57,927 bases of DNA, taken from Utricularia gibba. Taxonomy: Eukaryota > Plantae > Magnoliophyta. Location: contig NEEC01000287.1 in NCBI GenBank assembly GCA_002189035.1, positions 1-57,927 on the forward strand. The letters run 5' to 3'. A program made the position numbers and the translations under genes. This document shows, piece by piece, positions 583 through 57,927 of this stretch. The notes under the pieces were generated by a model, which was not told where the DNA came from, did not search any database, and worked only from the letters and a program-made list of their open reading frames with translations. Position 1 is the first letter of the stretch. Every line of letters starts with the position of its first letter.

Positions 583-3500
583 GGGCCCGAGCCCGACCCG
601 ACCTCCGCCCGATCCTGGTGCCCCTCGAGAGCGCCTCCTCAAATATAAATCTTGTGGATGAGAAAGCCATTTGGGGTGCTCATGACATCCTAACTTCAAA
701 AAATGCATGTTGATTTTTGTTGAATAGGACCCGATTGGGCTCAGGAGTCGAACCGAACCTTGGTCCGGATGAACTTCCCAATGAAAGCACCACCCAAAAA
801 CGACAAGCTTTCCTTCAGAAACCATGTAAGCAGCTGCCGAAAACCCAACGTTAATAAATGGATCACTTTTTTTCCCGGGCTACAAATGACTATGGGCCCG
901 AGCCCGACCTGACCTCCGGCCCGATCCTGGTGCCCTCGAGAGCGCCTCCTCAAATATAAAGCTTGTGGATGAGAAAACCATTTGGGGTGCTCATGACATC
1001 CTAACTTCAATAAATGCATCACGATTTTCGTCAAATAGTACCTGATTTGGCTCAGGAGTCGAACCGAAACTTGGGTCTGGACGAAGTTCCCAACGACAGC
1101 ACCCACCCAAAAAAGACAAGCTTTTCCTTCAGAAACCATGTAGGCAGCTGCCGAAAACCCAACGTTAATAAATGGATCACTTTTTTTGCCGGGCTACAAA
1201 TGACTATGGGCCCGATTTCGAAAGACCTCCGGCCCGATCCTAGTGCCCCTCGAGAGCGCCTCCTCAAATAAAAGCATGTGGTTGAGAAAACCATTTGGGG
1301 GCTCATGACATCCTAACTTCAATAAATGCATCACGATTTTCGTTGAATAGGACCCGATTGGGCTCAGGAGTCGAACCGAACCTTGGGTCCGGATGAACTT
1401 CCCAACGAAAGCACCCACCAAAAACGACAAGCTTTTCCTTCAGAAACAATGTAGGCAGCTGCCGAAAAACCCAACGTTAATAAATGGATCACTTTTTTTG
1501 CCGGGCTACAAATGACTATGGGCCCGAGCCGACCGACCTCCGGCCCGATCCTGGTGCCCTCGAGAGCCTCCTCAAATATAAAGCTTGTGGATGAAACCAT
1601 TTGGGGTGCTCATGACATCCTAACTTCAATAAATGCATCACGATTTTCGTCGAATAGACCGATTTGGCTCAGGAGTCGAACCGAACCTTGGTCGGATGAA
1701 GTTCCCAACGAAAGCACCCACCAAAAACGACAAGCTTTTCCTTCAGAAACCATGTAGCAGCTGCCGAAAAACCAACGTTAATAAATGGATCATTTTTTGC
1801 CGGGCTACAAATGACTATGGGCCCGAGTTCGATATGACCTCCGGCCCGATCCTAGTGCCCCTCGAGAGCGCCTCCTCAAATAAAAAGCTTGTGGTTGAGA
1901 AACCATTTGGGGTGCTCATGACATCCTAACTTCAATAAATGCATCACGATTTTCGTTGAATAGGACCCGATTGGCTCAGGAGTCGAACCGAACCTTGGGT
2001 CCGGATGAACTTCCCAACGAAAGCACCCACCCAAAAACGACAAGCTTTTCCTTCAGAAACAATGTAGGCAGCTGCCGAAAACCCAACGTTAATAAATGGA
2101 TCACTTTTTTTGCCGGGCTACAAATGACTATGGGCCCGAGCCCGACCCGACCTCCGGCCCGATCCTGGTGCCCCTCGAGAGCGCCTCCTCAAATATAAAT
2201 CTTGTGGATGAGAAACCATTTGGGGTGCTCATGACATCCTAACTTCAAAAAATGCATACGATTTTCGTTGAATAGGACCCGATTGGGCTCAGGAGTCGAA
2301 CCGAACCTTGGGTCCGGATGAACTTCCCAATGAAAGCACCAACCAAAAACGACAAGCTTTTCCTTCAGAAACAATGTAGGCAGCTGCCGAAAACCCAACG
2401 TTAATAAATGGATCACTTTTTTTGCCGGGCTACAAATGACTATGGGCCCGAGCCCGACCGACCTCCGGCCCGATCTGGTGCCCCTCGAGAGCGCCTCCTC
2501 AAATATAAAAGCTTGTGGGATGAAAACCATTTGGGGTGCTCATGACATCCTAACTTCAATAAATGCATCACGATTTTCGTCAATAGACCGATTTGGCTCA
2601 GGAGTCGAACCGAAACTTGGGTCCGGATGAACTTCCCAACGAAAGCACCCACCCAAAAAACGACAAGCTTTTCCTTCAGAAACAATGTAGGCAGCTGCCG
2701 AAAACCCAACGTTAATAAATGGATCACTTTTTTTGCCGGGCTACAAATGACTATGGGCCCGATTTCGACGACCCGGCCGATCCTAGTGCCCCTCGAGAGC
2801 GCCTCCTCAAATAAAAAGTTGTGGTTGGAAAACCATTTGGGGTGCTCATGACATCCTAACTTCAATAAATGCATCACGATTTTCGTTGAATAGGACCCGA
2901 TTGGGCGCAGGAGTCGAACCGAACCTTGGGTCCGGATGAACTTCCCAACGAAAGCACCCACCAAAAAACGACAAGCTTTTCCTTCAGAAACAATGTAGGC
3001 AGCTGCGAAAACCCAACGTTAATAAATGGATCACTTTTTTTGCCGGGCTACAAATGACTATGGGCCCGAGCCCGACCTGACCTCCGGCCCGATCCTAGTG
3101 CCCCTCGAGAGCGCCTCCTCAAATATAAAGCTTGTGGATGAGAAAACCATTTGGGGGTGCTCATGACATCCTAACTTCAATAAATGCATCACGATTTTCG
3201 TCGAATAGGACCCGATTGGCTCAGGAGTCGAACCGAACCTTGGGTCGGATGAACTTCCCAACGAAAGCACCCACCAAAAACGACAAGCTTTTCCTTCAGA
3301 AACAATGTAGGCAGCTGCCGAAAACCCAACGTTAATAAATGGATCACTTTTTTTGCCGGGCTACAAATGACTATGGGCCCGAGTTCGGACCTCCGGCCCG
3401 ATCCTTGCCCCTCGAGAGCGCCTCCTCAAATAAAAAGCTTGTGGAGAAAACCATTTGGGGTGCTCATGACATCCTAACTTCAATAAATGCATCACGATTT

Positions 3501-3678
3501 TCGTTGAATAGGACCCGATTGGGCTCAGGAGTCGAACCGAACCTTGGGTCCGGATGAACTTCCCAACGAAAGCACCCCCAAAAACGACAAGCTTTTCCTT
3601 CAGAAACCATGTAAGCAGCTGCCGAAAACCCAACGTTAATAAATGGATCACTTTTTTTGCCGGGCTACAAATGACTAT
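583..3678. repeat. Two copies of a 5-monomer HOR (A-B-C-E-like-C'), ~1.55 kb
   Basis: A-type monomers start at 583, 2132 and 3679 (spacing 1549, 1547). The fourth monomers (1520, 3062) carry the GTCGAAT allele and are followed by a GAGTTCG-headed monomer (1819, 3375). Markers are partly mixed. Confidence 0.6.
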
Positions 3679-6600
3679 GGCCGAGCCCGACCCGACCTCC
3701 GGCCCGATCCTGGTGCCCCTCGAGAGCGCCTCCTCAAATAAAATCTTGTGGATGAGAAACCATTTGGGGTGCTCATGACATCCTAACTTCAAAAATGCAT
3801 CACGATTTTTGTTGAATAGGACCCGATTGGGCTCAGGAGTCGAACCGAACCTTGGTCCGGATGAACTTCCCAATGAAAGCACCAAACCAAAAACGACAAG
3901 CTTTTCCTTCAGAAACCATGTAAGCAGCTGCCGAAAACCCAACGTTAATAAATGGATCACTTTTTTCCCGGGCTACAAATGACTATGGGCCCGAGCCGAC
4001 CTGACCTCCGGCCCGATCCTGGTGCCCCTCGAGAGCGCCTCCTCAATATAAAGCTTGTGGATGAGAAAACCATTTGGGGTGCTCATGACATCCTAACTTC
4101 AATAAATGCATCACGATTTTCGTCAAATAGACCGATTTGGCTCAGGAGTCGAACCGAAACTTGGGTCGGACGAAGTTCCCAACGAAGCACCCACCCAAAA
4201 AAGACAAGCTTTTCCTTCAGAAACAATGTAGGCAGCTGCCGAAAACCCAACGTTAATAAATGGATCACTTTTTTTGCCGGGCTACAAATGACTATGGGCC
4301 CGATTTCGACTGACCTCCGCCGATCCTAGTGCCCCTCGAGAGCGCCTCCTCAAATAAAGCTTGTGGTTGAGAAAACCATTTGGGGTGCTCATGACATCCT
4401 AACTTCAATAAATGCATCACGATTTTCGTTGAATAGGACCCGATTGGGCGCAGGAGTCGAACCGAACCTTGGGTCCGGATGAACTTCCCAACGAAAGCAC
4501 CCACCAAAAACGACAAGCTTTTCCTTCAGAAACAATGTAGGCAGCTGCCGAAAACCCAACGTTAATAAATGGATCACTTTTTTTGCCGGGCTACAAATGA
4601 CTATGGGCCCGAGTTCGACCGACCTCCGGCCCGATCCTAGTGCCCCTCGAGAGCGCCTCCTCAAATATAAAGCTTGTGGATGAGAAAACCATTTGGGGTG
4701 CTCATGACATCCTAACTTCAATAAATGCATCACGATTTTCGAAAGGACCCGATTGGGCTCAGGAGTCGAACCGAACCTTGGGTCCGGATGAACTTCCCAA
4801 CGAAAGCACCCACCCAAAAACGACAAGCTTTTCCTTCAGAAACAATGTAGGCAGCTGCCGAAAACCCAACGTTAATAAATGGATCACTTTTTTGCCGGGC
4901 TACAAATGACTATGGGCCCGAGCCCGGACCTCCGGCCCGATCCTGGTGCCCCTCGAGAGCGCCTCCTCAAATATAAAGCTTGTGGATGAAAACCATTTGG
5001 GGTGCTCATGACATCCTAACTTCAATAAATGCATCACGATTTTCGTTGAATAGGACCCGATTGGCTCAGGAGTCGAACCGAACCTTGGGTCCGGACGAAC
5101 TTTCCAACGAAAGCACCCACCAAAAACGACAAGCTTTTCCTTCAGAAACCATGTAGGCAGCTGCCGAAAACCCAACGTTAATAAATGGATCACTTTTTTT
5201 GCCGGGCTACAAATGACTATGGGCCCGAGCCCGACCCGACCTCCGGCCCGATCCTGGTGCCCCTCGAGAGCGCCTCCTCAAATATAAAGCTTGTGGATGA
5301 GAAACCATTTGGGGTGCTCATGACATCCTAACTTCAAAAAATGCATCACGATTTTCGTGAATAGGACCCGATTGGGCTCAGGAGTCGAACCGAACCTTGG
5401 TCCGGATGAACTTCCCAATGAAAGCACCACCCAAAACGACAAGCTTTTCCTTCAGAAACCATGTAAGCAGCTGCCGAAAACCCAACGTTAATAAATGGAT
5501 CACTTTTTTTGCCGGGCTACAAATGACTATGGGCCCGAGCCCGACCTGACCTCCGGCCCGATCCTGGTGCCCCTCGAGAGCGCTCCTCAAATATAAAGCT
5601 TGTGGATGAGAAAACCATTTGGGTGCTCATGACATCCTAACTTCAATAAATGCATCACGATTTTCGTCAAATAGACCCGATTTGGCTCAGGAGTCGAACC
5701 GAACCTTGGGTCGGACGAAGTTCCCAACGAAGCACCCACCCAAAAAAGACAAGCTTTTCCTTCAGAAACAATGTAGGCAGCTGCCGAAAACCCAACGTTA
5801 ATAAATGGATCACTTTTTTTGCCGGGCTACAAATGACTATGGGCCCGAGCCCGACGACCTCCGGCCGATCCTAGTGCCCCTCGAGAGCGCCTCCTCAAAT
5901 AAAAATTGTGGATGAGAAAACCATTTGGGGTGCTCATGACATCCTAACTTCAATAAATGCATCACGATTTTCGTTGAATAGGACCCGATTGGGCTCAGGA
6001 GTCGAACCGAACCTTGGGTCCGGATGAACTTCCCAACGAAAGCACCCACCAAAAAACGACAAGCTTTTCCTTCAGAAACATGTAGGCAGCTGCCGAAAAC
6101 CCAACGTTAATAAATGGATCACTTTTTTTCCCGGGCTACAAATGACTATGGGCCCGAGCCCGACCTGACCTCCGGCCCGATCCTGGTGCCCCTCGAGAGC
6201 GCCTCCTCAAATATAAAGCTTGTGGATGAGAAAACCATTTGGGGTGCTCATGACATCCTAACTTCAATAAATGCATCACGATTTTCGTCAAATAGACCGA
6301 TTGGCTCAGGAGTCGAACCGAACCTTGGGTCGGACGAAGTTCCCAACGAAAGCACCCACCCAAAAACGACAAGCTTTTCCTTCAGAAACCATGTAGGCAG
6401 CTGCCGAAAACCCAACGTTAATAAATGGATCACTTTTTTGCCGGGCTACAAATGACTATGGGCCCGAGTTCGAATGACCTCCGGCCCGATCCTAGTGCCC
6501 CTCGAGAGCGCCTCCTCAAATAAAAGCTTGTGGATGAGAAAACCATTTGGGGTGCTCATGACATCCTAACTTCAATAAATGCATCACGATTTTCGTTGAA

Positions 6601-8303
6601 TAGGACCCGATTGGGCTCAGGAGTCGAACCGAACCTTGGGTCCGGATGAACTTCCCAACGAAAGCACCCACCCAAAAACGACAAGCTTTTCCTTCAGAAA
6701 CAATGTAGGCAGCTGCCGAAAACCCAACGTTAATAAATGGATCACTTTTTTTGCCGGGCTACAAATGACTATGGGCCCGAGCCCGACCCGACCTCCGGCC
6801 CGATCCTGTGCCCCTCGAGAGCGCCTCCTCAAATAAAAGCTTGTGGATGAGAAAACCATTTGGGGTGCTCATGACATCCTAACTTCAATAAATGCATCAC
6901 GATTTTCGTTGAATAGGACCCGATTGGGCTCAGGAGTCGAACCGAACCTTGGGTCCGGATGAACTTCCCAACGAAAGCACCCACCCAAAAACGACAAGCT
7001 TTTCCTTCAGAAACATGTAGGCAGCTGCCGAAAACCCAACGTTAATAAATGGATCACTTTTTTTGCCGGGCTACAAATGACTATGGGCCCGATTTCGACT
7101 GACCTCCGGCCGATCCTAGTGCCCCTCGAGAGCGCCTCCTCAAATAAATTGTGGATGAGAAACCATTTGGGGTGCTCATGACATCCTAACTTCAATAAAT
7201 GCATCACGATTTTCGTTGAATAGGACCCGATTGGGCTCAGGAGTCGAACCGAACCTTGGGTCCGGATGAACTTCCCAACGAAAGCACCCACCCAAAAACG
7301 ACAAGCTTTTCCTTCAGAAACAATGTAGGCAGCTGCCGAAAACCCAACGTTAATAAATGGATCACTTTTTTGCCGGGCTACAAATGACTATGGGCCCGAG
7401 CCCGACCCGACCTCCAGCCCGATCCTGGTGCCCCTCGAGAGCGCCTCCTCAAATATAAATCTTGTGGATGAGAAACCATTTGGGGTGCTCATGACATCCT
7501 AACTTCAAAAATGCATCGATTTTTGTTGAATAGGACCCGATTGGGCTCAGGAGTCGAACCGAACCTTGGTCCGGATGAACTTCCCAATGAAAGCACCAAA
7601 CCAAAAACGACAAGCTTTTCCTTCAGAAACCATGTAAGCAGCTGCCGAAAACCCAACGTTAATAAATGGATCACTTTTTTTCCCGGGCTACAAATGACTA
7701 TGGGCCCGAGCCCGACCTGACCTCCGGCCCGATCCTGGTGCCCCTCGAGAGCGCCTCCTCAAATATAAAGCTTGTGGATGAGAAAACCATTTGGGGTGCT
7801 CATGACATCCTCTTCAATAAATGCATCACGATTTTCGTCAAATAGGACCGATTTGGCTCAGGAGTCGAACCGAAACTTGGGTCGGACGAACTTCCCAACG
7901 AAGCACCCACCAAAAAAGACAAGCTTTTCCTTCAGAAACATGTAGGCAGCTGCCGAAAACCCAACGTTAATAAATGGATCAACCTAACAGAACCGACGAT
8001 CAACCCCGATTTCCGGCCAGATCCTAGTGCCCCTCGAGAGCGCCTCCTCAAATATAAATCTTGTGGATGAGAAACCATTTGGGGTGCTCATGACATCCTA
8101 ACTTCAATAAATGCATCACGATTTTCGTTGAATAGGACCCGATTGGGCGCAGGAGTCGAACCGAACCTTGGGTCCGGATGAACTTCCCAACGAAAGCACC
8201 CACCAAAAACGACAAGCTTTTCCTTCAGAAACAATGTAGGCAGCTGCCGAAAACCCAACGTTAATAAATGGATCACTTTTTTTGCCGGGCTACAAATGAC
8301 TAT

Positions 8304-11300
8304 GGGCCCGAGCCCGACCCGACCTCCAGCCCGATCCTGGTGCCCCTCGAGAGCGCCTCCTCAAATATAAATCTTGTGGATGAGAAAGCCATTTGGGGTG
8401 CTCATGACATCCTAACTTCAAAAAATGCACGATTTTTGTTGAATAGGACCCGATTGGGCTCAGGAGTCGAACCGAACCTTGGTCCGGATGAACTTCCCAA
8501 TGAAAGCACCAACCAAAAACGACAAGCTTTTCCTTCAGAAACCATGTAAGCAGCTGCCGAAAACCCAACGTTAATAAATGGATCACTTTTTTTCCCGGGC
8601 TACAAATGACTATGGGCCCGAGCCCGACCTGACCTCCGGCCCGATCCTGGTGCCCCTCGAGAGCGCCTCCTCAAATATAAAGCTTGTGGATGAGAAAACC
8701 ATTTGGGGTGCTCATGACATCCTAACTTCAATAAATGCATCACATTTTCGTCAAATAGACCTGATTGGCTCAGGAGTCGAACGAAACTTGGGTCGGACGA
8801 AGTTCCAACGAAGCACCACCCAAAAAAGACAAGCTTTTCCTTCAGAAACCATGTAGGCAGCTGCCGAAAACCCAACGTTAATAAATGGATCACTTTTTTG
8901 CCGGGCTACAAATGACTATGGGCCCGAGTTCGAATGACCTCCGGCCCGATCCTAGTGCCCCTCGAGAGCGCCTCCTCAAATAAAAGCATGTGGTTGAGAA
9001 AACCATTTGGGGTGCTCATGACATCCTAACTTCAATAAATGCATCACGATTTTCGTTGAATAGGACCCGATTGGGCTCAGGAGTCGAACCGAACCTTGGG
9101 TCCGGATGAACTTCCCAACGAAAGCACCCACCAAAAACGACAAGCTTTTCCTTCAGAAACAATGTAGGCAGCTGCCGAAAACCCAACGTTAATAAATGGA
9201 TCACTTTTTTTGCCGGGCTACAAATGACTATGGGCCCGATTTCGACAAGACCTCCGGCCGATCCTAGTGCCCCTCGAGAGCGCCTCCTCAAATATAAAGC
9301 TTGTGGATGAGAAACCATTTGGGGTGCTCATGACATCCTAACTTCAATAAATGCATCACGATTTTCGTTGAATAGGACCCGATTGGGCTCAGAGTCGAAC
9401 CGAACCTTGGGTCCGGATGAACTTCCCAACGAAAGCACCCACCCAAAAACGACAAGCTTTTCCTTCAGAAACAATGTAGGCAGCTGCCGAAAACCCAACG
9501 TTAATAAATGGATCACTTTTTTGCCGGGCTACAAATGACTATGGGCCCGAGCCCGACCCGACCTCCGGCCCGATCCTGGTGCCCCTCGAGAGCGCCTCCT
9601 CAAATATAAAGCTTGTGGATGAGAAACCATTTGGGGTGCTCATGACATCCTAACTTCAAAAAAATGCATCATTTTTGTTGAATAGGACCCGATTGGGCTC
9701 AGGAGTCGAACCGAACCTTGGTCCGGATGAACTTCCCAATGAAAGCACCCAAAAAACGACAAGCTTTTCCTTCAGAAACCATGTAAGCAGCTGCCGAAAA
9801 CCCAACGTTAATAAATGGATCACTTTTTTTTTCCCGGGCTACAAATGACTATGGGCCCGAGCCCGACCTGACCTCCGGCCGATCCTGGTGCCCCTCGAGA
9901 GCGCCTCCTCAAATATAAAGCTTGTGGATGAGAAAACCATTTGGGGTGCTCATGACATCCTAACTTCAATAAATGCATCACGATTTTCGTGAATAGGACC
10001 GATTGGCTCAGGAGTCGAACCGAACCTTGGGTCGGACGAAGTTCCCAACGAAGCACCCACCCAAAAAAGACAAGCTTTTCCTTCAGAAACCATGTAGGCA
10101 GCTGCCGAAAACCCAACGTTAATAAATGGATCACTTTTTTGCCGGGCTACAAATGACTATGGGCCCGAGTTCGAATGACCTCCGGCCCGATCCTAGTGCC
10201 CCTCGAGAGCGCCTCCTCAAATAAAAGCTTGTGGTTGAGAAAACCATTTGGGGTGCTCATGACATCCTAACTTCAATAAATGCATCACGATTTTCGTTGA
10301 ATAGGACCCGATTGGGCTCAGGAGTCGAACCGAACCTTGGGTCCGGATGAACTTCCCAACGAAAGCACCACCCAAAAACGACAAGCTTTTCCTTCAGAAA
10401 CAATGTAGGCAGCTGCCGAAAACCCAACGTTAATAAATGGATCACTTTTTTTGCCGGGCTACAAATGACTATGGGCCCGACGACGACCTCCGGCCGATCC
10501 TAGTGCCCCTCGAGAGCGCCTCCTCAAATAAATCTTGTGGATGAGAAACCATTTTGCTCATGACATCCTAACTTCAATAAATGCATCACGATTTTCGTTG
10601 AATAGGACCCGATTGGGCTCAGGTCGAACCGAACCTTGGGTCCGGATGAACTTCCCAACGAAAGCACCCACCCAAAAACGACAAGCTTTTCCTTCAGAAA
10701 CATGTAGCAGCTGCCGAAAACCCAACGTTAATAAATGGATCACTTTTTTTGCCGGGCTACAAATGACTATGGGCCCGAGCCCGACCCGACCTCCGGCCCG
10801 ATCCTGGTGCCCCTCGAGAGCGCCTCCTCAAATATAAAGCTTGTGGATGAGAAAACCATTTGGGGTGCTCATGACATCCTAACTTCAAAAAATGCATGAT
10901 TTTTGTTGAATAGGACCCGATTGGGCTCAGGAGTCGAACCGAACCTTGGTCCGGATGAACTTCCCAATGAAAGCACCAACCAAAAACGACAAGCTTTTCC
11001 TTCAGAAACCATGTAAGCAGCTGCCGAAAACCCAACGTTAATAAATGGATCACTTTTTTTGCCGGGCTACAAATGACTATGGGCCCGAGCGACCTGACCT
11101 CCGGCCGATCCTGGTGCCCCTCGAGAGCGCCTCCTCAAATATAAAGCTTGTGGATGAGAAAACCATTTGGGGTGCTCATGACATCCTAACTTCAATAAAT
11201 GCATCACGATTTTGAATAGACCGATTGGCTCAGGAGTCGAACGAAACTTGGGTCCGGATGAAGTTCCCAACGAAAGCACCCACCCAAAAACGACAAGCTT

Positions 11301-14633: not shown

Positions 14634-14644
14634 GGAGTCGAACC
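14634..14644 (-). promoter_or_regulatory. Pol III B-box-like motif GGTTCGACTCC (representative copy; present in nearly every monomer, first at 120-130)
   Basis: Plus-strand GGAGTCGAACC reverse-complements to GGTTCGACTCC, an exact fit to the tRNA B-box consensus GGTTCGANTCC. There is no convincing A-box or cloverleaf, so function is unproven. Confidence 0.4.
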
Positions 14645-31000: not shown

Positions 31001-31224
31001 TTGGGGTGCTCATGACATCCTAACTTCAATAAATGCATCACGATTTTCGTTGAATAGGACCCGATTGGGCGCAGGAGTCGAACCGAACCTTGGGTCCGGA
31101 TGAACTTCCCAACGAAAGCACCACCCAAAAACGACAAGCTTTTCCTTCAGAAACAATGTAGGCAGCTGCCGAAACCCAACGTTAATAAATGGATCACTTT
31201 TTTTGCCGGGCTACAAATGACTAT
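25022..31224. repeat. 4-monomer HOR (A-B-C/C'-D) x5, ~1.24 kb
   Basis: A-headed monomers start at 25022, 26269, 27515, 28752, 29987 and 31225 (spacings 1247, 1246, 1237, 1235, 1238). The copies at 28752 and 31225 carry only part of the A marker set. Confidence 0.75.
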
Positions 31225-44532: not shown

Positions 44533-47340
44533 GGGCCCGAGCCCGACCTGACCTCCGGCCCGATCCTGGTGCCCCTCGAGAGCGCCTCCTCAAATATAAA
44601 GCTTGTGGATGAGAAAACCATTTGGGGTGCTCATGACATCCTAACTTCAATAAATGCATCACGATTTTCGTCAATAGTACCTGATTTGGCTCAGGAGTCG
44701 AAGCGAAAACTTGGGTCTGGACGAAGTTCCCAACGACAGCACCCCCCAAAAAAGACAAGCTTTTCCTTGAGAAACCATGTAGGCAGCTGCCGAAAACCCA
44801 ACGTTAATTAAATGGATCACTTTTTTGCCGGGTTACAAATGACTATGGGCCCGAGTTCGATATGACCTCCGGCCCGATCCTAGTGCCCCTCGAGAGTGCC
44901 TCCTCAAATAAAGCATGTGGTTGAGAAAACCATTTGGGGTGCTCATGACATCCTAACTTCAATAAATGCATCACGATTTTCGTTGAATAGGACCCGATTG
45001 GGCGCAGGAGTCGAACCGAACCTTGGGTCCGGATGAACTTCCCAACGAAAGCACCCACCCAAAACGACAAGCTTTTCCTTCAGAAACAATGTAGGCAGCT
45101 GCCGAAAACCCAACGTTATAAATGGATCACTTTTTTTGCCGGGCTACAAATGACTATGGGCCCGAGCCCGACCCGACCTCCAGCCCGATCCTGGTGCCCC
45201 TCGAGAGCGCCTCCTCAAATATAAATCTTGTGGATGAGAAAGCCATTTGGGGTGCTCATGACATCCTAACTTCAAAAAATGCATGTTGATTTTTGTTGAA
45301 TAGGACCCGATTGGGCTCAGGAGTCGAACCGAACCTTGTGTCCGGATGAACTTCCCAATGAAAGCACCAAACCAAAAACGACAAGCTTTTCCTTCAGAAA
45401 CATGTAAGCAGCTGCCGAAAACCCAACGTTAATAAATGGATCACTTTTTTTCCCGGGCTACAAATGACTATGGGCCCGAGCCCGACCTGACCTCCGGCCC
45501 GATCCTGGTGCCCCTCGAGAGCGCCTCCTCAAATATAAAGCTTGTGGATGAGAAAACCATTTGGGGTGCTCATGACATCCTAACTTCAATAAATGCATCA
45601 CGATTTTCGTCAAATAGTACCTGATTTGGCTTAGGAGTCGAAGCGAAACTTGGGTCTGGACGAAGTTCCCAACGACAGCACCCACCCAAAAAAGACAAGC
45701 TTTTCCTTCAGAAACCATGTAGGCAGCTGCCGAAAACCCAACGTTAATTAATGGATCACTTTTTTGCCGGGTTACAAATGACTATGGGCCCGAGTTCGAT
45801 ATGACCTCCGGCCGATCCTAGTGCCCCTCGAGAGTGCCTCCTCAAATAAAAGCATGTGGTTGAGAAACCATTTGGGGTGCTCATGACATCCTAACTTCAA
45901 TAAATGCATCACGATTTTCGTTGAATAGGACCCGATTGGGCGCAGGAGTCGAACCGAACCTTGGGTCCGGATGAACTTCCCAACGAAAGCACCCACCCAA
46001 AAACGACAAGCTTTTCCTTCAGAAACAATGTAGGCAGCTGCCGAAAACCCAACGTTATAAATGGATCACTTTTTTTGCCGGGCTACAAATGACTATGGGC
46101 CCGAGCCCGACCGACCTCCAGCCCGATCCTGGTGCCCCTCGAGAGCGCCTCCTCAAATATAAATCTTGTGGATGAGAAAGCCATTTGGGGTGCTCATGAC
46201 ATCCTAACTTCAAAAAATGCATGTTGATTTTTGTTGAATAGGACCCGATTGGGCTCAGGAGTCGAACCGAACCTTGTGTCCGGATGAACTTCCCAATGAA
46301 AGCACCAAACCAAAAACGACAAGCTTTTCCTTCAGAAACCATGTAAGCAGCTGCCGAAAACCCAACGTTAATAAATGGATCACTTTTTTTCCGGGCTACA
46401 AATGACTATGGGCCCGAGCCCGACCTGACCTCCGGCCCGATCCTGGTGCCCCTCGAGAGCGCTCCTCAAATATAAAGCTTGTGGATGAGAAAACATTTGG
46501 GGTGCTCATGACATCCTAACTTCAATAAATGCATCACGATTTTCGTCAAATAGTACCTGATTTGGCTCAGGAGTCGAACGAAACTTGGGTCTTGACGAAG
46601 TTCCCAACGACAAGCACCCACCAAAAAAGACAAGCTTTTCCTTCAGAAACCATGTAGGCAGCTGCCGAAAACCCAACGTTAATAATGGATCACTTTTTTG
46701 CCGGGTTACAAATGACTATGGGCCCGAGTTCGATATGACCTCCGGCCCGATCCTAGTGCCCTCGAGAGCGCCTCCTCAAATAAAAGCATGGTTGAGAAAA
46801 CCATTTGGGGTGCTCATGACATCCTAACTTCAATAAATGCATCACGATTTTCGTTGAATAGGACCCGATTGGGCGCAGGAGTCGAACCGAACCTTGGGTC
46901 CGGATGAACTTCCAACGAAAGCACCCACCAAAAACGACAAGCTTTTCCTTCAGAAACAATGTAGGCAGCTGCCGAAAACCCAACGTTAATAAATGGATCA
47001 CTTTTTTTGCCGGGCTACAAATGACTATGGGCCCGAGCCCGACCCGACCTCCAGCCCGATCCTGGTGCCCCTCGAGAGCGCCTCCTCAAATATAAATCTT
47101 GTGGATGAGAAAGCCATTTGGGGTGCTCATGACATCCTAACTTCAAAAATGCATGTTGATTTTTTTGAATAGGACCCGATTGGGCTCAGGAGTCGAACCG
47201 AACCTTGTGTCCGGATGAACTTCCCAATGAAAGCACCAACCAAAAACGACAAGCTTTTCCTTCAGAAACCATGTAATCAGCTGCCGAAAACCCAACGTTA
47301 ATAAATGGATCACTTTTTTTCCCGGGCTACAAATGACTAT
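44533..47340. repeat. 3-monomer HOR (B-C'-A) x3, ~0.935 kb
   Basis: B at 44533, 45472, 46410; C' at 44847, 45786, 46720; A at 45158, 46097, 47029. The private deletion AACGTTATAAATGG at ~45113 and ~46051 is one unit apart. Confidence 0.85.
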
Positions 47341-50300
47341 GGGCCGAGCCCGACCTGACCTCCGGCCCGATCCTGGTGCCCCTCGAGAGCGCCTCCTCAA
47401 ATATAAAGCTTGTGGATGAGAAAACCATTTGGGGTGCTCATGACATCCTAACTTCAAAAAATGCATCTTGATTTTTGTCGAATAGGACCCGATTGGGCTC
47501 AGGAGTCGAACCGAACCTTGGGTCCGGACGAAGTTCCCAATGAAAGCACCCAACAAAAAACGACAAGCTTTTCCTTCAGAAACCATGTAAGCAGCTGCCG
47601 AAAACCAACGTTAATAAATGGATCACTTTTTTGCCGGGTTACAAATGACTATGGGCCCGAGTTCGATATGACCTCCGGCCCGATCCTAGTGCCCCTCGAG
47701 AGTGCCCTCCTCAAATAAAGCATGTGGTTGAGAAAACCATTTGGGGTGCTCATGACATCCTAACTTCAATAAATGCATCACGATTTTCGTTGAATAGGAC
47801 CCGATTGGGCGCAGGAGTCGAACCGAACCTTGGGTCCGGATGAACTTCCCAACGAAAGCACCCACCCAAAAACGACAAGCTTTTCCTTCAGAAACAATGC
47901 AAAAAAAATGGATCACTTTTTTTCCAAATGACTATGGGCCCGAGCCCGACCCGACCTCCAGCCCGATCCTGGTGCCCCTCGAGAGCGCCTCCTCAAATAT
48001 AAATCTTGTGGATGAGAAAGCCATTTGGGGTGCTCATGACATCCTAACTTCAAAAATGCATGATTTTTGTTGAATAGGACCCGATTGGGCTCAGGAGTCG
48101 AACCGAACCTTGTGTCCGGATGAACTTCCCAATGAAAGCACCAAACCAAAAACGACAAGCTTTTCCTTCAGAAACATGTAAGCAGCTGCCGAAAACCCAA
48201 CGTTAATAAATGGATCACTTTTTTTCCGGGCTACAAATGACTATGGGCCGAGCCCGACCTGACCTCCGGCCCGATCCTGGTGCCCCTCGAGAGCGCCTCC
48301 TCAAATATAAAGCTTGTGGATGAGAAAACATCTCATGACATCCTAACTTCAATAAATGCATCACGATTTTCGTCAATAGTACCTGACTTCCGAAACTGGG
48401 AAAAAAAAGCACGACAAGCTTTTCCTTAAAACAGCTGCGAAAACCAACGTTAATAAATGGATCACTTTTTTTGCCGGGCTACAAATGACTATGGGCCGAG
48501 CCCGACCCGACCTCCAGCCCGATCCTGGTGCCCCTCAAAATAAAAATCTTGTGGATGAGAAAGCCATTTGGGGTGCTCATGACATCCTAACTTAAAAAAA
48601 TGCATGTTGATTTTTGTTGAATAGGACCGATTGGGCTCAGGAGTCGAACCGAACCTTGTGTCCGGATGAACTTCCCAATGAAAGCACCAAACCAAAAACG
48701 ACAAGCTTTTCCTTCAGAAACCATGTAATCAGCTGCCGAAAACCCAACGTTAATAAATGGATCACTTTTTTTCCCGGGCTACAAATGACTATGGGCCCGA
48801 GCCCGACCCGACCTCGGCCCGATCCTGGTGCCCCTCGAGAGCGCCTCCTCAAATATAAAGCTTGTGGATGAGAAAACCATTTGGGGTGCTCATGACATCC
48901 TAACTTCAATAAATGCATCACGATTTTCGTTAAATAGTACCTTTGGGAGGAGTCGAAACCTTGGGGGGAACAACGAAAGCACCCCCAAAAAAGACAAGCT
49001 TTTCCTTGAGAAACCATGTAGGCAGCTGCCGAAAACCCAACGTTAATAAATGGATCACTTTTTTGCCGGGTTACAAATGACTATGGGCCCGAGTTCGATA
49101 TGACCTCCGGCCCGATCCTAGTGCCCCTCGAGAGTGCCTCCTCAAATAAATAGCATGTGGTTGAGAAAACCATTTGGGGTGCTCATGACATCCTAACTTC
49201 AATAAATGCATCACGATTTTCGTTGAATAGGACCCGATTGGGCGCAGGAGTCGAACCGAACCTTGGGTCCGGATGAACTTCCCAACGAAAGCACCCACCC
49301 AAAAACGACAAGCTTTTCCTTCAGAAACAATGTAGGCAGCTGCCGAAAACCCAACGTTAATAAATGGATCACTTTTTTTGCGGGCTACAAATGACTATGG
49401 GCCCGAGCCCGACCGACCTCCGCCCGATCCTGGTGCCCCTCGAGAGCGCCTCCTCAAATATAAATCTTGTGGATGAGAAACCATTTGGGGTGCTCATGAC
49501 ATCCTAACTTCAATAAATGCATCAATTTTTGTTGAATAGGACCCGATTGGGCTCAGGAGTCGAACCGAACCTTGGTCCGGATGAACTTCCCAATGAAAGC
49601 ACCAAACCAAAAACGACAAGCTTTTCCTTCAGAAACATGTAGCAGCTGCCGAAAACCCAACGTTAATAAATGGATCACTTTTTTTCCGGGCTACAAATGA
49701 CTATGGGCCCGAGCCCGACCTGACCTCCGGCCCGATCTGGTGCCCCTCGAGAGCGCCTCCTCAAATATAAAGCTTGTGGATGAGAAAACCATTTGGGGTG
49801 CTCATGACATCCTAACTTCAATAAATGCATCACGATTTTCGTCAAATAGTACCTGATTTGGCTCAGGAGTCGAACCGAAACTTGGGTCTGGACGAAGTTC
49901 CCAACGACAGCACCCACCCAAAAAAGACAAGCTTTTCCTTCAGAAACAATGTAGGCAGCTGCCGAAAACCCAACGTTAATAAATGGATCACTTTTTTTGC
50001 CGGGCTACAAATGACTATGGGCCCGAGCCCGACCGACCTCCAGCCCGATCCTGGTGCCCCTCGAGAGCGCCTCCTCAAATATAAATCTTGTGGATGAGAA
50101 AGCCATTTGGGGTGCTCATGACATCCTAACTTCAAAAAATGCATGTTGATTTTTGTTGAATAGGACCCGATTGGGCTCAGGAGTCGAACCGAACCTTGTG
50201 TCCGGATGAACTTCCCAACGAAAGCACCAAACCAAAAAACGACAAGCTTTTCCTTCAGAAACATGTAATCAGCTGCCGAAAACCCAACGTTAATAAATGG

Positions 50301-50942
50301 ATCACTTTTTTTCCGGGCTACAAATGACTATGGGCCCGAGCCCGACCCGACCTCGCCCGATCCTGGTGCCCCTCGAGAGCGCCTCCTCAAATATAAAGCT
50401 TGTGGATGAGAAAACCATTTGGGGTGCTCATGACATCCTAACTTCAATAAATGCATCGATTTTCGTTAAATAGTACCTGATTGGCTCAGGAGTCGAACCG
50501 AAACTTGGGTCTGGACGAAGTTCCCAACGAAGCACCCACCCAAAAACGACAAGCTTTTCCTTCAGAAACATGTAGGCAGCTGCCGAAAACCCAACGTTAA
50601 TAAATGGATCACTTTTTTGCCGGGCTACAAATGACTATGGGCCCGAGCCGACTGACCTCCGGCCGATCCTGTGCCCCTCGAGAGCGCTCCTCAAATAAAG
50701 CTGTGGTTGAGAAAACCATTTGGGGTGCTCATGACATCCTAACTTCAATAAATGCATCACGATTTTCGTCGAATAGGACCCGATTGGGCTCAGGAGTCGA
50801 ACGAACCTTGGGTCGGATGAACTTCCCAACGAAAGCACCCACCCAAAAACGACAAGCTTTTCCTTCAGAAACAATGTAGGCAGCTGCCGAAAACCCAACG
50901 TTAATAAATGGATCACTTTTTTTCCGGGCTACAAATGACTAT

Positions 50943-53900
50943 GGGCCCGAGCCCGACCTGACCTCCGCCCGATCCTGGTGCCCCTCGAGAGACCTCCTCA
51001 AATAAAGCTTGTGGATGAGAAAACCATTTGGGGTGCTCATGACATCCTAACTTCAATAAATGCATCACGATTTTCGTCAATAGTACCTGATTGGCTCAGG
51101 AGTCGAACCGAACTTGGGTCTGGATGAAGTTCCCAACGACAGCACCCACCAAAAAAGACAAGCTTTTCCTTCAGAAACAATGTAGGCAGCTGCCGAAAAC
51201 CCAACGTTAATAAATGGATCACTTTTTTTGCCGGGCTACAAATGACTATGGGCCCGAGCCCGACCGACCTCCGCCCGATCCTGGTGCCCCTCGAGAGCGC
51301 CTCCTCAAATATAAATCTTGTGGATGAGAAAGCCATTTGGGGTGCTCATGACATCCTAACTTCAAAAAATGCATGTTGATTTTCGTTGAATAGGACCCGA
51401 TTGGGCTCAGGAGTCGAACCGAACCTTGGTCCGGATGAACTTCCCAATGAAAGCACCAAACCAAAAACGACAAGCTTTTCCTTCAGAAACCATGTAATCA
51501 GCTGCCGAAAACCCAACGTTAATAAATGGATCACTTTTTTTCCCGGGCTACAAATGACTATGGGCCCGATGACCTCCGGCCCGATCCTGGTGCCCCTCGA
51601 GAGACCTCCTCAAATATAAAGCTTGTGGATGAGAAAACCATTTGGGGTGCTCATGACATCCTAACTTCAATAAATGCATCACGATTTTCGTCAATAGTAC
51701 CTGATTGGCTCAGGAGTCGAACCGAACTTGGGTCTGGACGAAGTTCCCAACGACAGCACCCACCCAAAAAAGACAAGCTTTTCCTTCAGAAACAATGTAG
51801 GCAGCTGCCGAAAACCCAACGTTAATAAATGGATCACTTTTTTTGCCGGGCTACAAATGACTATGGGCCCGAGCCCGACCCGACCTCCGCCCGATCCTGG
51901 TGCCCTCGAGAGCGCCTCCTCAAATATAAATCTTGTGGATGAGAAAGCCATTTGGGGTGCTCATGACATCCTAACTTAAAAAAATGCATGTTGATTTTTG
52001 TTGAATAGGACCCGATTGGGCTCAGGAGTCGAACCGAACCTTGTGTCCGGATGAACTTCCCAATGAAAGCACCAAACCAAAAAACGACAAGCTTTTCCTT
52101 CAGAAACATGTAATCAGCTGCCGAAAACCCAACGTTAATAAATGGATCACTTTTTTTCCCGGGCTACAAATGACTATGGGCCCGAGCCGACCGACCTCGG
52201 CCCGATCCTGGTGCCCCTCGAGAGCGCCTCCTCAAATATAAAGCTTGTGGATGAGAAACCATTTGGGGTGCTCATGACATCCTAACTTCAATAAATGCAT
52301 CACGATTTTCGTTAAATAGTACCTGATTTGGCTCAGGAGTCGAACCGAAACTTGGGTCTGGACGAAGTTCCCAACGACAGCACCCACCCAAAAAAGACAA
52401 GCTTTTCCTTCAGAAACAATGTAGGCAGCTGCCGAAAACCCAACGTTAATAATGGATCACTTTTTTGCCGGGTTACAAATGACTATGGGCCCGAGTTCGA
52501 CCTCCGGCCCGATCCTAGTGCCCTCGAGAGCGCCTCCTCAAATAAAAGCATGTGGTTGAGAAAACCATTTGGGGTGCTCATGACATCCTAACTTCAATAA
52601 ATGCATCACGATTTTCGTCGAATAGGACCCGATCGGGCTCAGGAGTCGAACAGAACCTTGGGTCGGATGAACTTCCCAACGAAAGAACCCACCCAAAAAC
52701 GACAAGCTTTTCCTTCAGAAACAATGTAGGCAGCTGCCGAAAACCCAACGTTAATAAATGGATCACTTTTTTTGCCGGGCTACAAATGACTATGGGCCCG
52801 ATTTCGACAAGACCTCCGGCCAGATCCTAGTGCCCCTCGAGAGCGCCTCCTCAAATAAAAAGTATGTGGTTGGAAAACCATTTGGGGTGCTCATGACATC
52901 CTAACTTCAATAAATGCATCACGATTTTCGTTGAATAGGACCCGATTGGGCTCAGGAGTCGAACCGAACCTTGTGTCCGGATGAACTTCCCAATGAAAGC
53001 ACCAACCAAAAACGACAAGCTTTTCCTTCAGAAACCATGTAAGCAGCTGCCGAAAACCCAACGTTAATAAATGGATCACTTTTTTCCCGGGCTACAAATG
53101 ACTATGGCCCGAGCCCGACCTGACCTCCGGCCCGATCCTGGTGCCCCTCGAGAGCGCCTCCTCAAATATAAAGCTTGTGGATGAGAAAACCATTTGGGGT
53201 GCTCATGACATCCTAACTTCAATAAATGCATCACGATTTTCGTCAAATAGTACCTGATTTGGCTCAGGAGTCGAACGAAACTTGGGTCTGGACGAAGTTC
53301 CCAACGACAGCACCCACCCAAAAAGACAAGCTTTTCCTTGAGAAACATGTAGGCAGCTGCCGAAAACCCAACGTTAATTAATGGATCACTTTTTTGCCGG
53401 GTTACAAATGACTATGGGCCCGAGTTCGATATGACCTCCGGCCCGATCCTAGTGCCCCTCGAGAGCGCCTCCTCAAATAAAAAGTATGTGGTTGGAAAAC
53501 CATTTGGGGTGCTCATGACATCCTAACTTCAATAAATGCATCACGATTTTCGTTGAATAGGACCCGATTGGGCGCAGGAGTCGAACCGAACCTTGGGTCC
53601 GGATGAACTTCCCAACGAAAGCACCCACCAAAAACGACAAGCTTTTCCTTCAGAAACAATGTAGGCAGCTGCCGAAAACCCAACGTTAATAAATGGATCA
53701 CTTTTTTTGCCGGGCTACAAATGACTATGGGCCGATTTCGACAAGACCTCCGGCCAGATCCTAGTGCCCCTCGAGAGCGCCTCCTCAAATATAAATCTTG
53801 TGGATGAGAAAGCCATTTGGGGTGCTCATGACATCTAACTTCAATAAATGCATCACGATTTTCGTTGAATAGGACCCGATTGGGCGCAGAGTCGAACCGA

Positions 53901-56900
53901 ACCTTGGGTCCGGATGAACTTCCCAACGAAAGCACCACCCAAAAACGACAAGCTTTTCCTTCAGAAACAATGTAGGCAGCTGCCGAAAACCCAACGTTAA
54001 TAAATGGATCACTTTTTTTGCCGGGCTACAAATGACTATGGGCCCGAGCCCGACCCGACCTCCGGCCCGATCCTGTGCCCCTCGAGAGCGCCTCCTCAAA
54101 TATAAAGCTTGTGGATGAGAAAGCCATTTGGGGTGCTCATGACATCCTAACTTCAAAAAATGCATCTTGATTTTTGTCGAATAGGACCCGATTGGGCTCA
54201 GGAGTCGAACCGAACCTTGTGTCCGGATGAACTTCCCAATGAAAGCACCAAACCAAAAACGACAAGCTTTTCCTTCAGAAACCATGTAACAGCTGCCGAA
54301 AACCCAACGTTAATAAATGGATCACTTTTTTTCCCGGGCTACAAATGACTATGGGCCCGAGCCCGACCTGACCTCCGGCCCGATCCTGGTGCCCCTCGAG
54401 AGACCTCCTCAAATATAAAGCTTGTGGATGAGAAAACCATTTGGGGTGCTCATGACATCCTAACTTCAATAAATGCATCACGATTTTCGTCAAATAGTAC
54501 CTGATTTGGCTCAGGAGTCGAACCGAACTTGGGTCTGGACGAAGTTCCCAACGACAGCACCCACCCAAAAAGACAAGCTTTTCCTTCAGAAACAATGTAG
54601 GCAGCTGCCGAAAACCCAACGTTAATAAATGGATCACTTTTTTTGCCGGGCTACAAATGACTATGGGCCCGAGCCCGACCCGACCTCCAGCCCGATCCTG
54701 GTGCCCCTCGAGAGCGCCTCCTCAAATATAAATCTTGTGGATGAGAAAGCCATTTGGGGTGCTCATGACATCCTAACTTAAAAAAATGCATGTTGATTTT
54801 TGTTGAATAGGACCCGATTGGGCTCAGGAGTCGAACCGAACCTTGGTCCGGATGAACTTCCCAATGAAAGCACCAAACCAAAACGACAAGCTTTTCCTTC
54901 AGAAACCATGTAATCAGCTGCCGAAAACCCAACGTTAATAAATGGATCACTTTTTTCCCGGGCTACAAATGACTATGGGCCCGAGCCGACCTGACCTCCG
55001 GCCGATCCTGGTGCCCCTCGAGAGCCCTCCTCAAATATAAAGCTTGTGGATGAGAAAACCATTTGGGGTGCTCATGACATCCTAACTTCAATAAATGCAT
55101 CACGATTTTCGTCAAATAGTACCTGATTTGGCTCAGGAGTCGAACCGAAACTTGGGTCTGGACGAAGTTCCCAACGACAGCACCCACCCAAAAAAGACAA
55201 GCTTTTCCTTCAGAAACAATGTAGGCAGCTGCCGAAAACCCAACGTTAATAAATGGATCACTTTTTTTGCCGGGCTACAAATGACTATGGGCCCGAGCCC
55301 GACCCGACCTCCGCCCGATCCTGGTGCCCCTCGAGAGCGCCTCCTCAAATATAAATCTTGTGGATGAGAAAGCCATTTGGGGTGCTCATGACATCCTAAC
55401 TTAAAAATGCATGTTGATTTTCGTTGAATAGGACCCGATTGGGCTCAGGAGTCGAACCGAACCTTGGTCCGGATGAACTTCCCAATGAAAGCACCACCAA
55501 AAACGACAAGCTTTTCCTTCAGAAACCATGTAATCAGCTGCCGAAAACCCAACGTTAATAAATGGATCACTTTTTTTCCCGGGCTACAAATGACTATGGG
55601 CCCGAGCCCGACCCGACCTCGGCCCGATCCTGGTGCCCCTCGAGAGCGCCTCCTCAAATATAAAGCTTGTGGATGAGAAAACCATTTGGGGTGCTCATGA
55701 CATCCTAACTTCAATAAATGCATCACGATTTTCGTTAAATAGTACCTGATTTGGCTCAGGAGTCGAACCGAAACTTGGGTCGGACGAAGTTCCAACGAAG
55801 CACCCACCCAAAAAGACAAGCTTTTCCTTCAGAAACCATGTAGGCAGCTGCCGAAAACCCGTTAATAATGGATCACTTTTTTGCCGGGTACAAATGACTA
55901 TGGGCCCGAGACGACCTCCGGCCGATCCTAGTGCCCCTCGAGAGTGCCTCCTCAAATAAAACAACCATTTGGGGTGCTCATGACATCCTAACTTCAATAA
56001 ATGCATCACGATTTTCGTCGAATAGGACCCGATCGGCTCAGGAGTCGAACAGAACCTTGGGTCGGATGAACTTCCCAACGAAAGCACCCACCCAAAAACG
56101 ACAAGCTTTTCCTTCAGAAACAATGTAGGCAGCTGCCGAAAACCCAACGTTAATAAATGGATCACTTTTTTTGCCGGGCTACAAATGACTATGGGCCCGA
56201 TTTCGACAAGACCTCCGGCCAGATCCTAGTGCCCCTCGAGAGCGCCTCCTCAAATAAAAAGTATGTGGTTGGAAAACCATTTGGGGTGCTCATGACATCC
56301 TAACTTCAATAAATGCATCACGATTTTCGTTGAATAGGACCCGATTGGGCTCAGGAGTCGAACCGAACTTGGTCCGGATGAACTTCCCAATGAAAGCACC
56401 AACCAAAAACGACAAGCTTTTCCTTCAGAAACCATGTAAGCAGCTGCCGAAAACCCAACGTTAATAAATGGATCACTTTTTTCCCGGGCTACAAATGACT
56501 ATGGGCCCGAGCCCGACCTGACCTCCGGCCCGATCCTGGTGCCCCTCGAGAGCGCCTCCTCAAATATAAAGCTTGTGGATGAGAAAACCATTTGGGTGCT
56601 CATGACATCCTAACTTCAATAAATGCATCACGATTTTCGTCAAATAGTACCTGATTTGGCTCAGGAGTCGAACGAACTTGGGTCTGGACGAAGTTCCCAA
56701 CGAAGCACCCACCAAAAAAGACAAGCTTTTCCTTGAGAAACCATGTAGGCAGCTGCCGAAAACCCAACGTTAATAATGGATCACTTTTTTGCCGGGTTAC
56801 AAATGACTATGGGCCCGAGTTCGATGACCTCCGGCCCGATCCTAGTGCCCTCGAGAGCGCCTCCTCAAATAAAAAGTATGTGGTTGGAAAACCATTTGGG

Positions 56901-57736
56901 GTGCTCATGACATCCTAACTTCAATAAATGCATCACGATTTTCGTTGAATAGGACCCGATTGGGCGCAGGAGTCGAACCGAACCTTGGGTCCGGATGAAC
57001 TTCCAACGAAAGCACCCACCAAAAAACGACAAGCTTTTCCTTCAGAAACAATGTAGGCAGCTGCCGAAAACCCAACGTTATAAATGGATCACTTTTTTTC
57101 CGGGCTACAAATGACTATGGGCCCGATTCGACAAGACCTCCGGCCAGATCCTGGTGCCCTCGAGAGCGCCTCCTCAAATATAAATCTGTGGATGAGAAAA
57201 CCATTTGGGGTGCTCATGACATCCTAACTTCAATAAATGCATCACGATTTTCGTGAATAGGACCGATTGGGCGCAGGAGTCGAACCGAACCTTGGGTCCG
57301 GATGAACTTCCCAACGAAAGCACCCACCCAAAAACGACAAGCTTTTCCTTCAGAAACAATGTAGGCAGCTGCCGAAAACCCAACGTTAATAAATGGATCA
57401 CTTTTTTTGCCGGGCTACAAATGACTATGGGCCCGAGCCCGACCCGACCTCCGGCCAGATCCTGTGCCCCTCGAGAGCGCCTCCTCAAATATAAAGCTTG
57501 TGGATGAGAAAACCATTTGGGGTGCTCATGACATCCTAACTTCAAAAAATGCATCGATTTTCGTCGAATAGGACCCGATTGGGCTCAGGAGTCGAACCGA
57601 ACCTTGGTCCGGATGAACTTCCCAACGAAAGCACCCACCAAAAACGACAAGCTTTTCCTTCAGAAACCATGTAAGCAGCTGCCGAAAACCCAACGTTAAT
57701 AAATGGATCACTTTTTTTCCGGGCTACAATGACTAT
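50943..57736. repeat. Tandem duplication of an 11-monomer block (~3.4 kb): B-A-B-A-B-C''-C/A-B-C-D-A/E, x2
   Basis: Rare alleles recur at ~3.39-3.42 kb offset: GTTAAATAGTAC (52311/55734), GATCGG plus GTCGAACAGAACC (52631-52657/56030-56056), a C/A hybrid (52794/56193), CCTTGAG (~53336/56731), and GTCGAAT in an A-like monomer (~54176/~57563). The match is firm from 52178 and looser from 50943. Confidence 0.8.
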
Positions 57737-57927
57737 GGGCCCGAGCCGACCGACCTCCGGCCGATCCTGGTGCCCCTCGAGAGCCTCCTCAAATATAAAG
57801 CTTGTGGATGAGAAAACCATTTGGGGTGCTCATGACATCCTAACTTCAATAAATGCATCACGATTTTCGTCAAATAGGACCTGATTTGGGCTCAGGAGTC
57901 GAACCGAAACTTGGGTCGGACGAAGTT

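Follow-up and report, generated by a model that had tools for sequence, protein, structure and literature searches.

A 311-bp satellite array of Utricularia gibba with four ordered monomer types and small, irregular higher-order structure

The window analysed here, a whole contig of 57,927 nt, is a single unbroken head-to-tail satellite array of about 186 monomers in one orientation (+). The contig is plant DNA (Utricularia gibba), not human. Four main SNP-defined monomer types (A, B, C and D) plus hybrids were found in a cyclic order, together with local duplications and chimeric monomers. From these observations, which come from the assembled sequence of one contig, we infer an ancestral 4-mer, a recombination pathway and an order of events. 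A fixed four-type order that was later altered by in-register recombination and local re-amplification probably explains the array. The irregular pattern of small higher-order repeats (HORs) is real but ordinary, of a type known from plant and human satellites.

TRF reported one 311-bp array spanning positions 1-57924. We placed 187 anchors on the + strand, which delimited 186 monomers with a spacing of 270-326 bp and a single exception, and the GC content was 0.47-0.49 along the entire window. The unit was 311-313 bp as assembled; its true length is probably about 315 bp when assembly deletions are allowed for. The unit is an internal dimer of halves of about 157 bp, a level proposed in an earlier note on this DNA, and the halves were 65% identical, about 8 SD above shuffles. 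As part of the same probable explanation, the 311-315-bp unit would be an old dimer of these subunits and non-coding. An Rfam search of positions 1-4000 gave no match, a tRNA search of the window found none, and no consistent ORF was present in the window. The TRF array breaks at 48373-48432 in one damaged monomer, where there was no foreign DNA. No age gradient was seen along the array. Exact-pattern scans of public metagenomes for independent copies gave 0 matches, and no published name or description of the satellite was found by sequence-string and word searches of the literature.

1-57927, + strand: satellite array (TRF period 311, 91% matches; anchors; GC).
48373-48437, + strand: damaged monomer, with loss or garbling of about 60 bp in one unit (48282-48835 aligned to two consensus units).

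About 45-57 SNP columns were linked in blocks, with r = 0.7-0.84 inside a block. SNP typing is reliable because singleton substitutions amounted to just 0.19% per base. The earlier note had named a continuum of monomers with no discrete clusters as one outcome that would speak against its HOR reading. The clusters were discrete, with a silhouette of 0.54-0.56 at k = 3-4 compared with 0.04-0.06 when columns were shuffled, and the array thus has the distinct subtypes of a HOR; 8% of monomers were poorly assigned and 18% were chimeric. The types differed by only 3-9%, and the distance between same-type monomers anywhere in the window was 2.4-4.1%. Monomer A of the earlier note is type B here and its B is type C. 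The proposed use of SmaI (CCCGGG) as a marker of the former proved sound: 37 monomers carried the site and 36 of them were type B.

The order of types was far from random. Steps along the A>B>C>D cycle numbered 115 of 185, against 46±6 in 10000 shuffles (maximum 77), as expected of the fixed subtype order in a HOR. The step B>C occurred 40 times (13.8±2.7 in shuffles). The earlier observation that type C almost always follows type B directly was overstated; the exceptions are more than the three then listed, with 10 cases among clear B monomers and 16 of 56 when partial ones are included. Several of the monomers in these positions were part-C chimeras. Linkage extended across the monomer border, most strongly from B sites to the C sites of the following monomer (r up to 0.77) and nearly as strongly from C sites to the head of the following D (r up to 0.69). 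The last 30 frame columns followed the type of the next monomer, not that of their own body: they were plain before B or C in 97/102 cases and T-type before D in 34/39. The loss of a whole monomer therefore leaves a clean junction within the 185-285 interval. At the right end of the window, (BC)n runs were followed by D and A.

The array was parsed into units between successive B monomers, which gave 3-mers (18), 4-mers (15), 2-mers (10), 5-mers (6), singles (5) and 7-mers (2). The window does contain multimers of several lengths, as had been proposed. The blocks of 5-, 4-, 3- and 2-mers fell where the earlier note had placed them, and BC dimers were located inside its dimer stretch at 49.4-55.9 kb. 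Its 11-mer level of about 3.4 kb corresponded to a duplicate, 50982-54392 versus 54393-57773. In the respective zones, distances at lags 3, 4, 11 and 12 were 1-2.8% compared with 5-9% at other lags, which is the periodicity of a HOR; across the 3-mer zones, lag-3 substitution distances were 1.6-2.8% versus 7-9%. The blocks were as follows.

620-3714, + strand: two diverged 5-monomer units (BCDcA, bcDAA), from the unit parse and a lag-5 distance of 3.7% versus 5-7%; a third 5-monomer unit starts at 3715, after this pair.
8342-13276, + strand: four consecutive 4-monomer units (BCDA, BcAA, BcAA, BCDA), from the unit parse and distances of 2.1, 2.1 and 1.1% at lags 4, 8 and 12 versus 5-6% at other lags.
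8029-14201, + strand: 12-monomer (about 3.7 kb) duplication, 8029-10504 versus 11728-14201 (monomers 26-33 paired with 38-45), with lag-12 distances of 0-2.9%, 3/8 pairs without a substitution difference and nearest neighbours at lag ±12.
14824-16694, + strand: two 3-monomer units (BCD BCD), lag 3 = 1.9% versus 7.4-7.7%.
21332-23202, + strand: two 3-monomer units (BCD BCD), then an A monomer, lag 3 = 1.6% versus 7.8-9.1%.
25060-31258, + strand: a run of five 4-monomer units and the longest regular one of the window, lags 4, 8 and 12 = 2.4, 2.4 and 2.5% versus 4.9-5.6%.
43019-47066, + strand: four BCD 3-mers, the youngest block, from the unit parse, substitution distances and chimera test; interrupted once, at 43949, by a B/consensus chimeric monomer, and with differences of 0-1.6% among the three BCD copies from 44262 (44262-47066).
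50982-57773, + strand: 11-monomer (about 3.4 kb) unit in two copies, BC dimers nested with BCD and BCDA units, lag 11 = 1.4% versus 5-8%, per-pair distances mostly 0-2%.

Rare variants were held in common by 9 pairs at lag 4 (1.2 expected) and by 7 pairs at lag 11 (1.1 expected), which shows that the 4-mers and the 11-mer were genuinely and recently duplicated in tandem. A long homogeneous reiteration of one multimer, as in a strict human-type HOR array, was not seen. The unit length changed about 40 times in 58 kb, and the longest run of equal-length units was 5 (P = 0.2). Equal lengths were adjacent in 15 cases versus 11.7±2.9 in shuffled unit order (P = 0.17); under a second labelling, adjacent identical units numbered 8 versus 3.5 (P = 0.012). 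For 35% of monomers the nearest neighbour lay no more than 12 monomers away (13% expected), and for 65% it lay farther off. One-period copies in the 4-mer zones differed by 2.1-2.4%, little closer than same-type monomers across the window, and much of the pattern may thus be old rather than ongoing. Because runs reached 5 copies at most, length clustering was weak and 4-mer copies were barely closer than other same-type pairs, a cyclic succession of monomer types that often skips members, plus a few young local amplifications, describes the array better. The earlier suggestion that several HOR lengths capture HOR turnover is supported in part by the recent 4-mer and 11-mer duplication and by the chimeras; as a statement about process, it extrapolates from one static, poorly polished contig.

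A duplication of about 18 kb (58 monomers) was rejected as a robust level. Under the first Ward labels, the stretches at 9.3-16.7 kb and 27.2-34.6 kb read as the same string of 24 monomer types, and the mean distance was smallest at lag 58. Lag-58 partners were not nearest relatives, and once the monomers had been re-framed and relabelled, no long-range run was longer than those in unit-shuffled nulls (P = 0.08 to 1).

Two-part chimeras of the main types made up 33/185 monomers in a test in which the 'consensus-like' half is partly defined by the absence of derived alleles. Their breakpoints were spread along the unit, which supports in-register unequal exchange or gene conversion. One B/C mosaic recurred in five monomers (Ward cluster f); the other four begin at 16695, 32191, 41170 and 47378.

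14202-14510, + strand: B/C mosaic monomer of the recurrent type (haplotype table; Ward cluster f; chimera test).

We propose that an earlier amplification set the four-monomer order A-B-C-D, about 1.25 kb long. Misaligned but in-register recombination, with unlike monomer types as partners, would later have removed or added whole monomers, by unequal sister-chromatid exchange, gene conversion or break-induced replication. This would yield BCD and BCA trimers, BC dimers, 5-mers, the recurrent B/C mosaic and many chimeric monomers. A few of these would then have been re-amplified locally, giving the 3-mers at 43-47 kb, the 4-mers at 8-13 and 25-31 kb, the 12-mer at 8-14 kb and the 11-mer at 51-58 kb.

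The same grammar might be a remnant first-order succession rule, left by a single ancient 4-mer (or 5-mer) that was worn down as monomers were deleted, duplicated and converted at random, while no new HORs arose. The non-significant adjacency and run length of equal-length units, lag-4 distances near the array-wide within-type values and the 65% of distant nearest neighbours would all be expected from such decay. However, the low distances of 0-1.6% among the 3-mer copies at 44.3-47.1 kb, of about 1.4% between the 11-mer copies and of 0% in three of the 12-mer pairs, together with the rare variants in common at lags 4 and 11, indicate young amplifications of derived units. The excess of identical neighbouring units under the second labelling and of nearest neighbours within 12 monomers also argues against decay, which we regard as unlikely. 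A selective explanation, in which the B-C pair is kept together for alternating protein-binding or nucleosome-positioning signals, might be modelled on the alternation of CENP-B-box and box-less monomers in some alpha-satellite dimers. It would suit a unit of two nucleosome-sized halves, the B>C linkage as the strongest between monomers, and the persistence of BC dimers where other types were lost. The C>D linkage is nearly equal, C is missing after B in 10-16 of 56 cases, and physical adjacency and recombination account for the linkage without selection, so that such constraint appears highly improbable.

The quality of the assembly bears on a further reading. Consensus errors were about 2% and deletion-biased, with 6.2 deletions versus 0.3 insertions per monomer, and monomer pairs almost without substitutions still differed at 6.7 gap positions; this noise shows poor polishing. 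Long-range order could be misassembled, since this is one satellite-only, poorly polished contig. The contig might then join reads from several arrays that lie on separate chromosomes or haplotypes and that each have a distinct regular HOR, and the coexistence of 2-, 3-, 4-, 5- and 11-mers would be a product of misassembly. Monomers that are otherwise identical show largely uncorrelated indel noise, typical of a thin long-read consensus, and unique anchors are lacking from the window, both as this reading predicts. The number of unit-length changes is far above what read joins could give, the same monomer types and sub-variants recur throughout the window, and the noise level is roughly even along it. 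We therefore consider an assembly artefact very unlikely, and retain in-register recombination on a fixed order, with local re-amplification, as the probable history.

Comparison with known satellites places the array among ordinary plant repeats. As in the window, the monomers of Arabidopsis CEN178/CEN180 and of the maize CentC and knob repeats occur as SNP-defined variants whose order recurs. Plant HORs, as described in reviews, are small, local and highly polymorphic, mostly 2-4 monomers, shorter than 10 kb and of low copy, with occasional larger duplications, and are explained there by unequal exchange, gene conversion or break-induced replication, all as in the window (PMC10984392; PMC13011684). 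By our own count from the parsed unit lengths, about 46% of monomers in the window belong to series of two or more units equal in length, and about 38% of CentC monomers are reported in HORs. The unit differs from Arabidopsis and maize satellites (156-180 bp) in being a fused dimer of 311-315 bp, and unlike in those satellites one cyclic four-type order runs through the whole window.

Human alpha-satellite arrays can contain a canonical n-mer alongside shorter and longer variants made by in-register exchange. These structural variants follow the grammar of the window: the monomer order is fixed, whole monomers or cassettes have been added or dropped, and the junctions carry hybrid monomers. 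Active human arrays are long and more than 95% homogeneous, whereas the regular run here reaches 5 copies at most. The likeness to primate alpha satellite drawn in the earlier note thus holds for organisation, by analogy. In sequence there is no relation: alpha satellite has an AT-rich monomer of about 171 bp, and the repeat here is a 311-bp plant unit with 48% GC.

Putative centromeric regions of U. gibba have been described as without satellite repeats (PMC8333044). The two nucleosome-sized halves, the HOR-type organisation, the array length of at least 58 kb and the satellite-only contig suggest that the 313-bp satellite might be the real centromeric repeat of this species, which we consider unlikely. 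Such a repeat could have been missed because its arrays were not joined to chromosome-scale contigs. If true, this reading would overturn the published view of satellite-free U. gibba centromeres (PMC8333044). The present finding itself fits current models and leaves them unchanged; it adds one plant satellite whose higher-order structure is small and irregular, together with a clear set of chimeric monomers as a record of exchange in register. SNP-typed monomers, such as the one type marked by the SmaI site, can serve to sort and place satellite-only contigs in this small genome, and allow testing of whether the repeat sits at U. gibba centromeres.

The window is one tandem array. Tandem Repeats Finder, run on the whole window, gave a period of 311 over 1-48373 and 48432-57924 (89-91% matches, 3-4% indels), and a 16-base anchor occurred 187 times on the plus strand at a spacing of 270-326 bp, with one exception at 48282-48830 where the interval held two monomers. 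A damaged monomer lies there (48373-48437, plus strand), with about 60 bp gone or scrambled at columns ~100-215 of the unit consensus, followed by a monomer without the anchor motif; no inserted foreign DNA was found at 48282-48830. This damage is the sole break in the array. The GC content was 0.47-0.49 along the entire window. No Rfam match was obtained for positions 1-4000, ARAGORN detected no tRNA in the window, and its ORFs were short with no frame in common, indicating that the window is non-coding. On the minus strand, a sequence that matches the tRNA-type B-box consensus recurs in every unit (window 120-130, then every ~311 bp). The internal dimer of ~157 bp described in the earlier note is real, as 102 of 157 positions were identical, ~8 SD over shuffles.

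Compared with the consensus, monomers had a mean of 6.2 deleted columns and only ~0.3 inserted bases, leaving aside two bins with damaged monomers, and deletions were found outside homopolymer runs too. As 220 monomer pairs nearly free of substitutions (mean 0.74) still differed at 6.7 gap positions, the majority of indels are consensus errors of the long-read assembly. Indel noise was mostly uncorrelated among otherwise identical monomers, and its bias towards deletion points to a long-read consensus with thin coverage or no polishing. The unit itself is probably closer to 315 than to 311 bp. The substitution signal was clean, with singletons at 0.19% per base, and monomers were typed by substitutions only, with indels left out.

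About 45-57 columns showed recurrent alternative bases, linked into blocks that define four monomer types.

Type A: near consensus
Type B: changes at columns 81, 99, 164, 174/176, 207, 213 and 258 (pairwise r 0.7-0.84); a subset has additional changes at columns 31, 47 and 90-92
Type C: changes at columns 102, 103, 109, 113, 118, 139, 148, 152, 156, 167 and 184 (r 0.7-0.84)
Type D: head changes at columns 27-39, plus column 178

Columns 286-288 and 313 form a further variable state, termed T-type. Columns 27-39, in the unit head around the first HindIII site, are a short hypervariable stretch in which at least four variants recur and split types D and A further. A CCCGGG site arises from the G-to-C change at column 258, and 36 of the 37 monomers bearing this site were type B. 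The SmaI site therefore marks the type called A in the earlier note, so that its A is our type B and its B is our type C. We re-framed the units at column 277, the frame of that note, and clustered them on 45 informative columns. The monomers formed discrete clusters and not a continuum: the silhouette was 0.54-0.56 at k = 3-4, against 0.04-0.06 with columns independently shuffled, and 8% of monomers were poorly assigned at k = 4. Substitution distance was 3.2-8.6% between types and 2.4-3.4% within types for clearly typed monomers (2.4-4.1% when weakly typed monomers were added).

The types follow a cyclic order, A>B>C>D. Steps of this cycle made up 115 of 185, against 46±6 in shuffles (maximum 77), and B>C steps alone numbered 40, against 13.8±2.7 in 10000 shuffles (maximum 26). 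Linkage spans monomer borders: B sites were correlated with C sites of the next monomer (r up to 0.77) and C sites with the D head of the next (r up to 0.69), whereas D head sites were poor predictors of the following monomer (r 0.2 or less). The variable slot of the cycle is thus after D. The proposed core of two monomers, B>C in our notation, is a fair description, but C>D is nearly as tight. The three exceptions to it that had been listed are an undercount, since B lacked a following C in ten clear and six weaker monomers. Several of these non-C followers carried the first C sites only, which identifies them as chimeras.

Intervals from B to B comprised 3-mers (18), 4-mers (15), 2-mers (10), 5-mers (6), singles (5) and 7-mers (2). 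All multimer blocks previously named were recovered by the unit parse, and lag distances (between monomers n positions apart) supported every period.

620-3714, plus strand: 5-mers by unit parse; lag 5 distance 3.7%, other lags 5-7%
31.2-32.8 kb and 40.2-41.7 kb: single 5-monomer intervals, only if a B/C mosaic monomer is not scored as B
8342-13276, plus strand: 4-mers by unit parse, 4 units
25060-31258, plus strand: 4-mers by unit parse, 5 units; lag 4 distance in the 4-mer zones 2.1-2.4%, other lags 5-6%
14824-16694, 21332-23202 and 44262-47066, plus strand: 3-mers by unit parse; lag 3 distance 1.6-2.8%, other lags 7-9%
Between 49.4 and 55.9 kb, plus strand: dimers, within the duplicated 11-monomer unit; lag 2 distance 4.4%, lag 1 7.5%
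50982-54392 and 54393-57773, plus strand: two copies of an 11-monomer unit; lag 11 distance 1.4%, other lags 5-8%
8029-10504 versus 11728-14201, plus strand: 12-monomer duplication, new in this analysis and not among the blocks previously named; 3 of 8 pairs with zero substitution difference

For rare variants, present in 2-4 monomers, most sharing was at two lags: lag 4, with 9 pairs against 1.2 expected, and lag 11, with 7 against 1.1. An ~18-kb repeat of the type order was seen at first and was lost on relabelling.

The earlier note had interpreted these blocks as a higher-order repeat (HOR) grammar of several lengths. The blocks are present, but their regularity is low: adjacent units were equal in length in 15 cases, against 11.7±2.9 in unit-order shuffles (P = 0.17), and the longest run of equal units was five. 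By our count from the unit list, ~46% of monomers belonged to units that stood next to another of equal length, in runs of two or more. An independent labelling gave P = 0.16 for equal length and P = 0.2 for the longest run, with a modest enrichment of identical adjacent units (8 versus 3.5, P = 0.012). The nearest relative was at most 12 monomers away in 35% of monomers (13% expected) and farther in 65%. It is conceivable that misassembly lies behind the mixed unit lengths, this being one contig without unique flanks, but the ~40 length changes in 58 kb are too frequent for read joins. The window does not consist of well-formed HOR arrays; it is best described as a single cyclic succession of monomers in which units are often skipped or inserted and to which a few young amplifications have been added locally.

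The final 30 columns of the original frame tracked the type of the next monomer, not their own body: they were plain in 97 of 102 cases before B or C and T-type in 34 of 39 before D, while D monomers sorted by their own body split 15 to 23. This places the joins left by whole-monomer loss within columns 185-285, where the types are alike. Such joins include D straight to B, yielding BCD trimers, and C straight to B, yielding BC dimers. Both products of D/A exchange were present (BCD 14 times, BCA 3 times). A two-segment chimera, called when it improved the fit by at least 3 informative sites, beat any single main type in 33 of 185 monomers, with breakpoints at columns 39-47, 81-103, 139-144, 176-178 and 294-314. 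One mosaic was recurrent.

Starts 14202, 16695, 32191, 41170 and 47378, plus strand: B/C mosaic monomer, five occurrences

Judged from sequence, such joins and chimeras are the footprints that would be expected of in-register unequal exchange or gene conversion. Sister-chromatid exchange, conversion and break-induced replication, all discussed in PMC10984392, are candidate pathways, any of which may have acted.

The observation in the earlier note was borne out in almost all details and its interpretation in part, and the feature belongs to a well-known kind of organisation, on a poorly polished contig. The array is not alpha satellite. It fits the small, local pattern of Arabidopsis HORs, in which two or three monomers are usually involved over less than 10 kb and large duplications occur now and then (PMC10984392). 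String and word searches of the literature found no published name or description of this satellite, and no independent copy turned up when contigs of public metagenomes were scanned with two patterns. Putative centromeric regions of U. gibba were reported without satellite repeats (PMC8333044), whereas the assembly holds this 58-kb satellite-only contig. Should the satellite prove to be the centromeric repeat of a species described as lacking one, its significance would be greater; otherwise it is modest.
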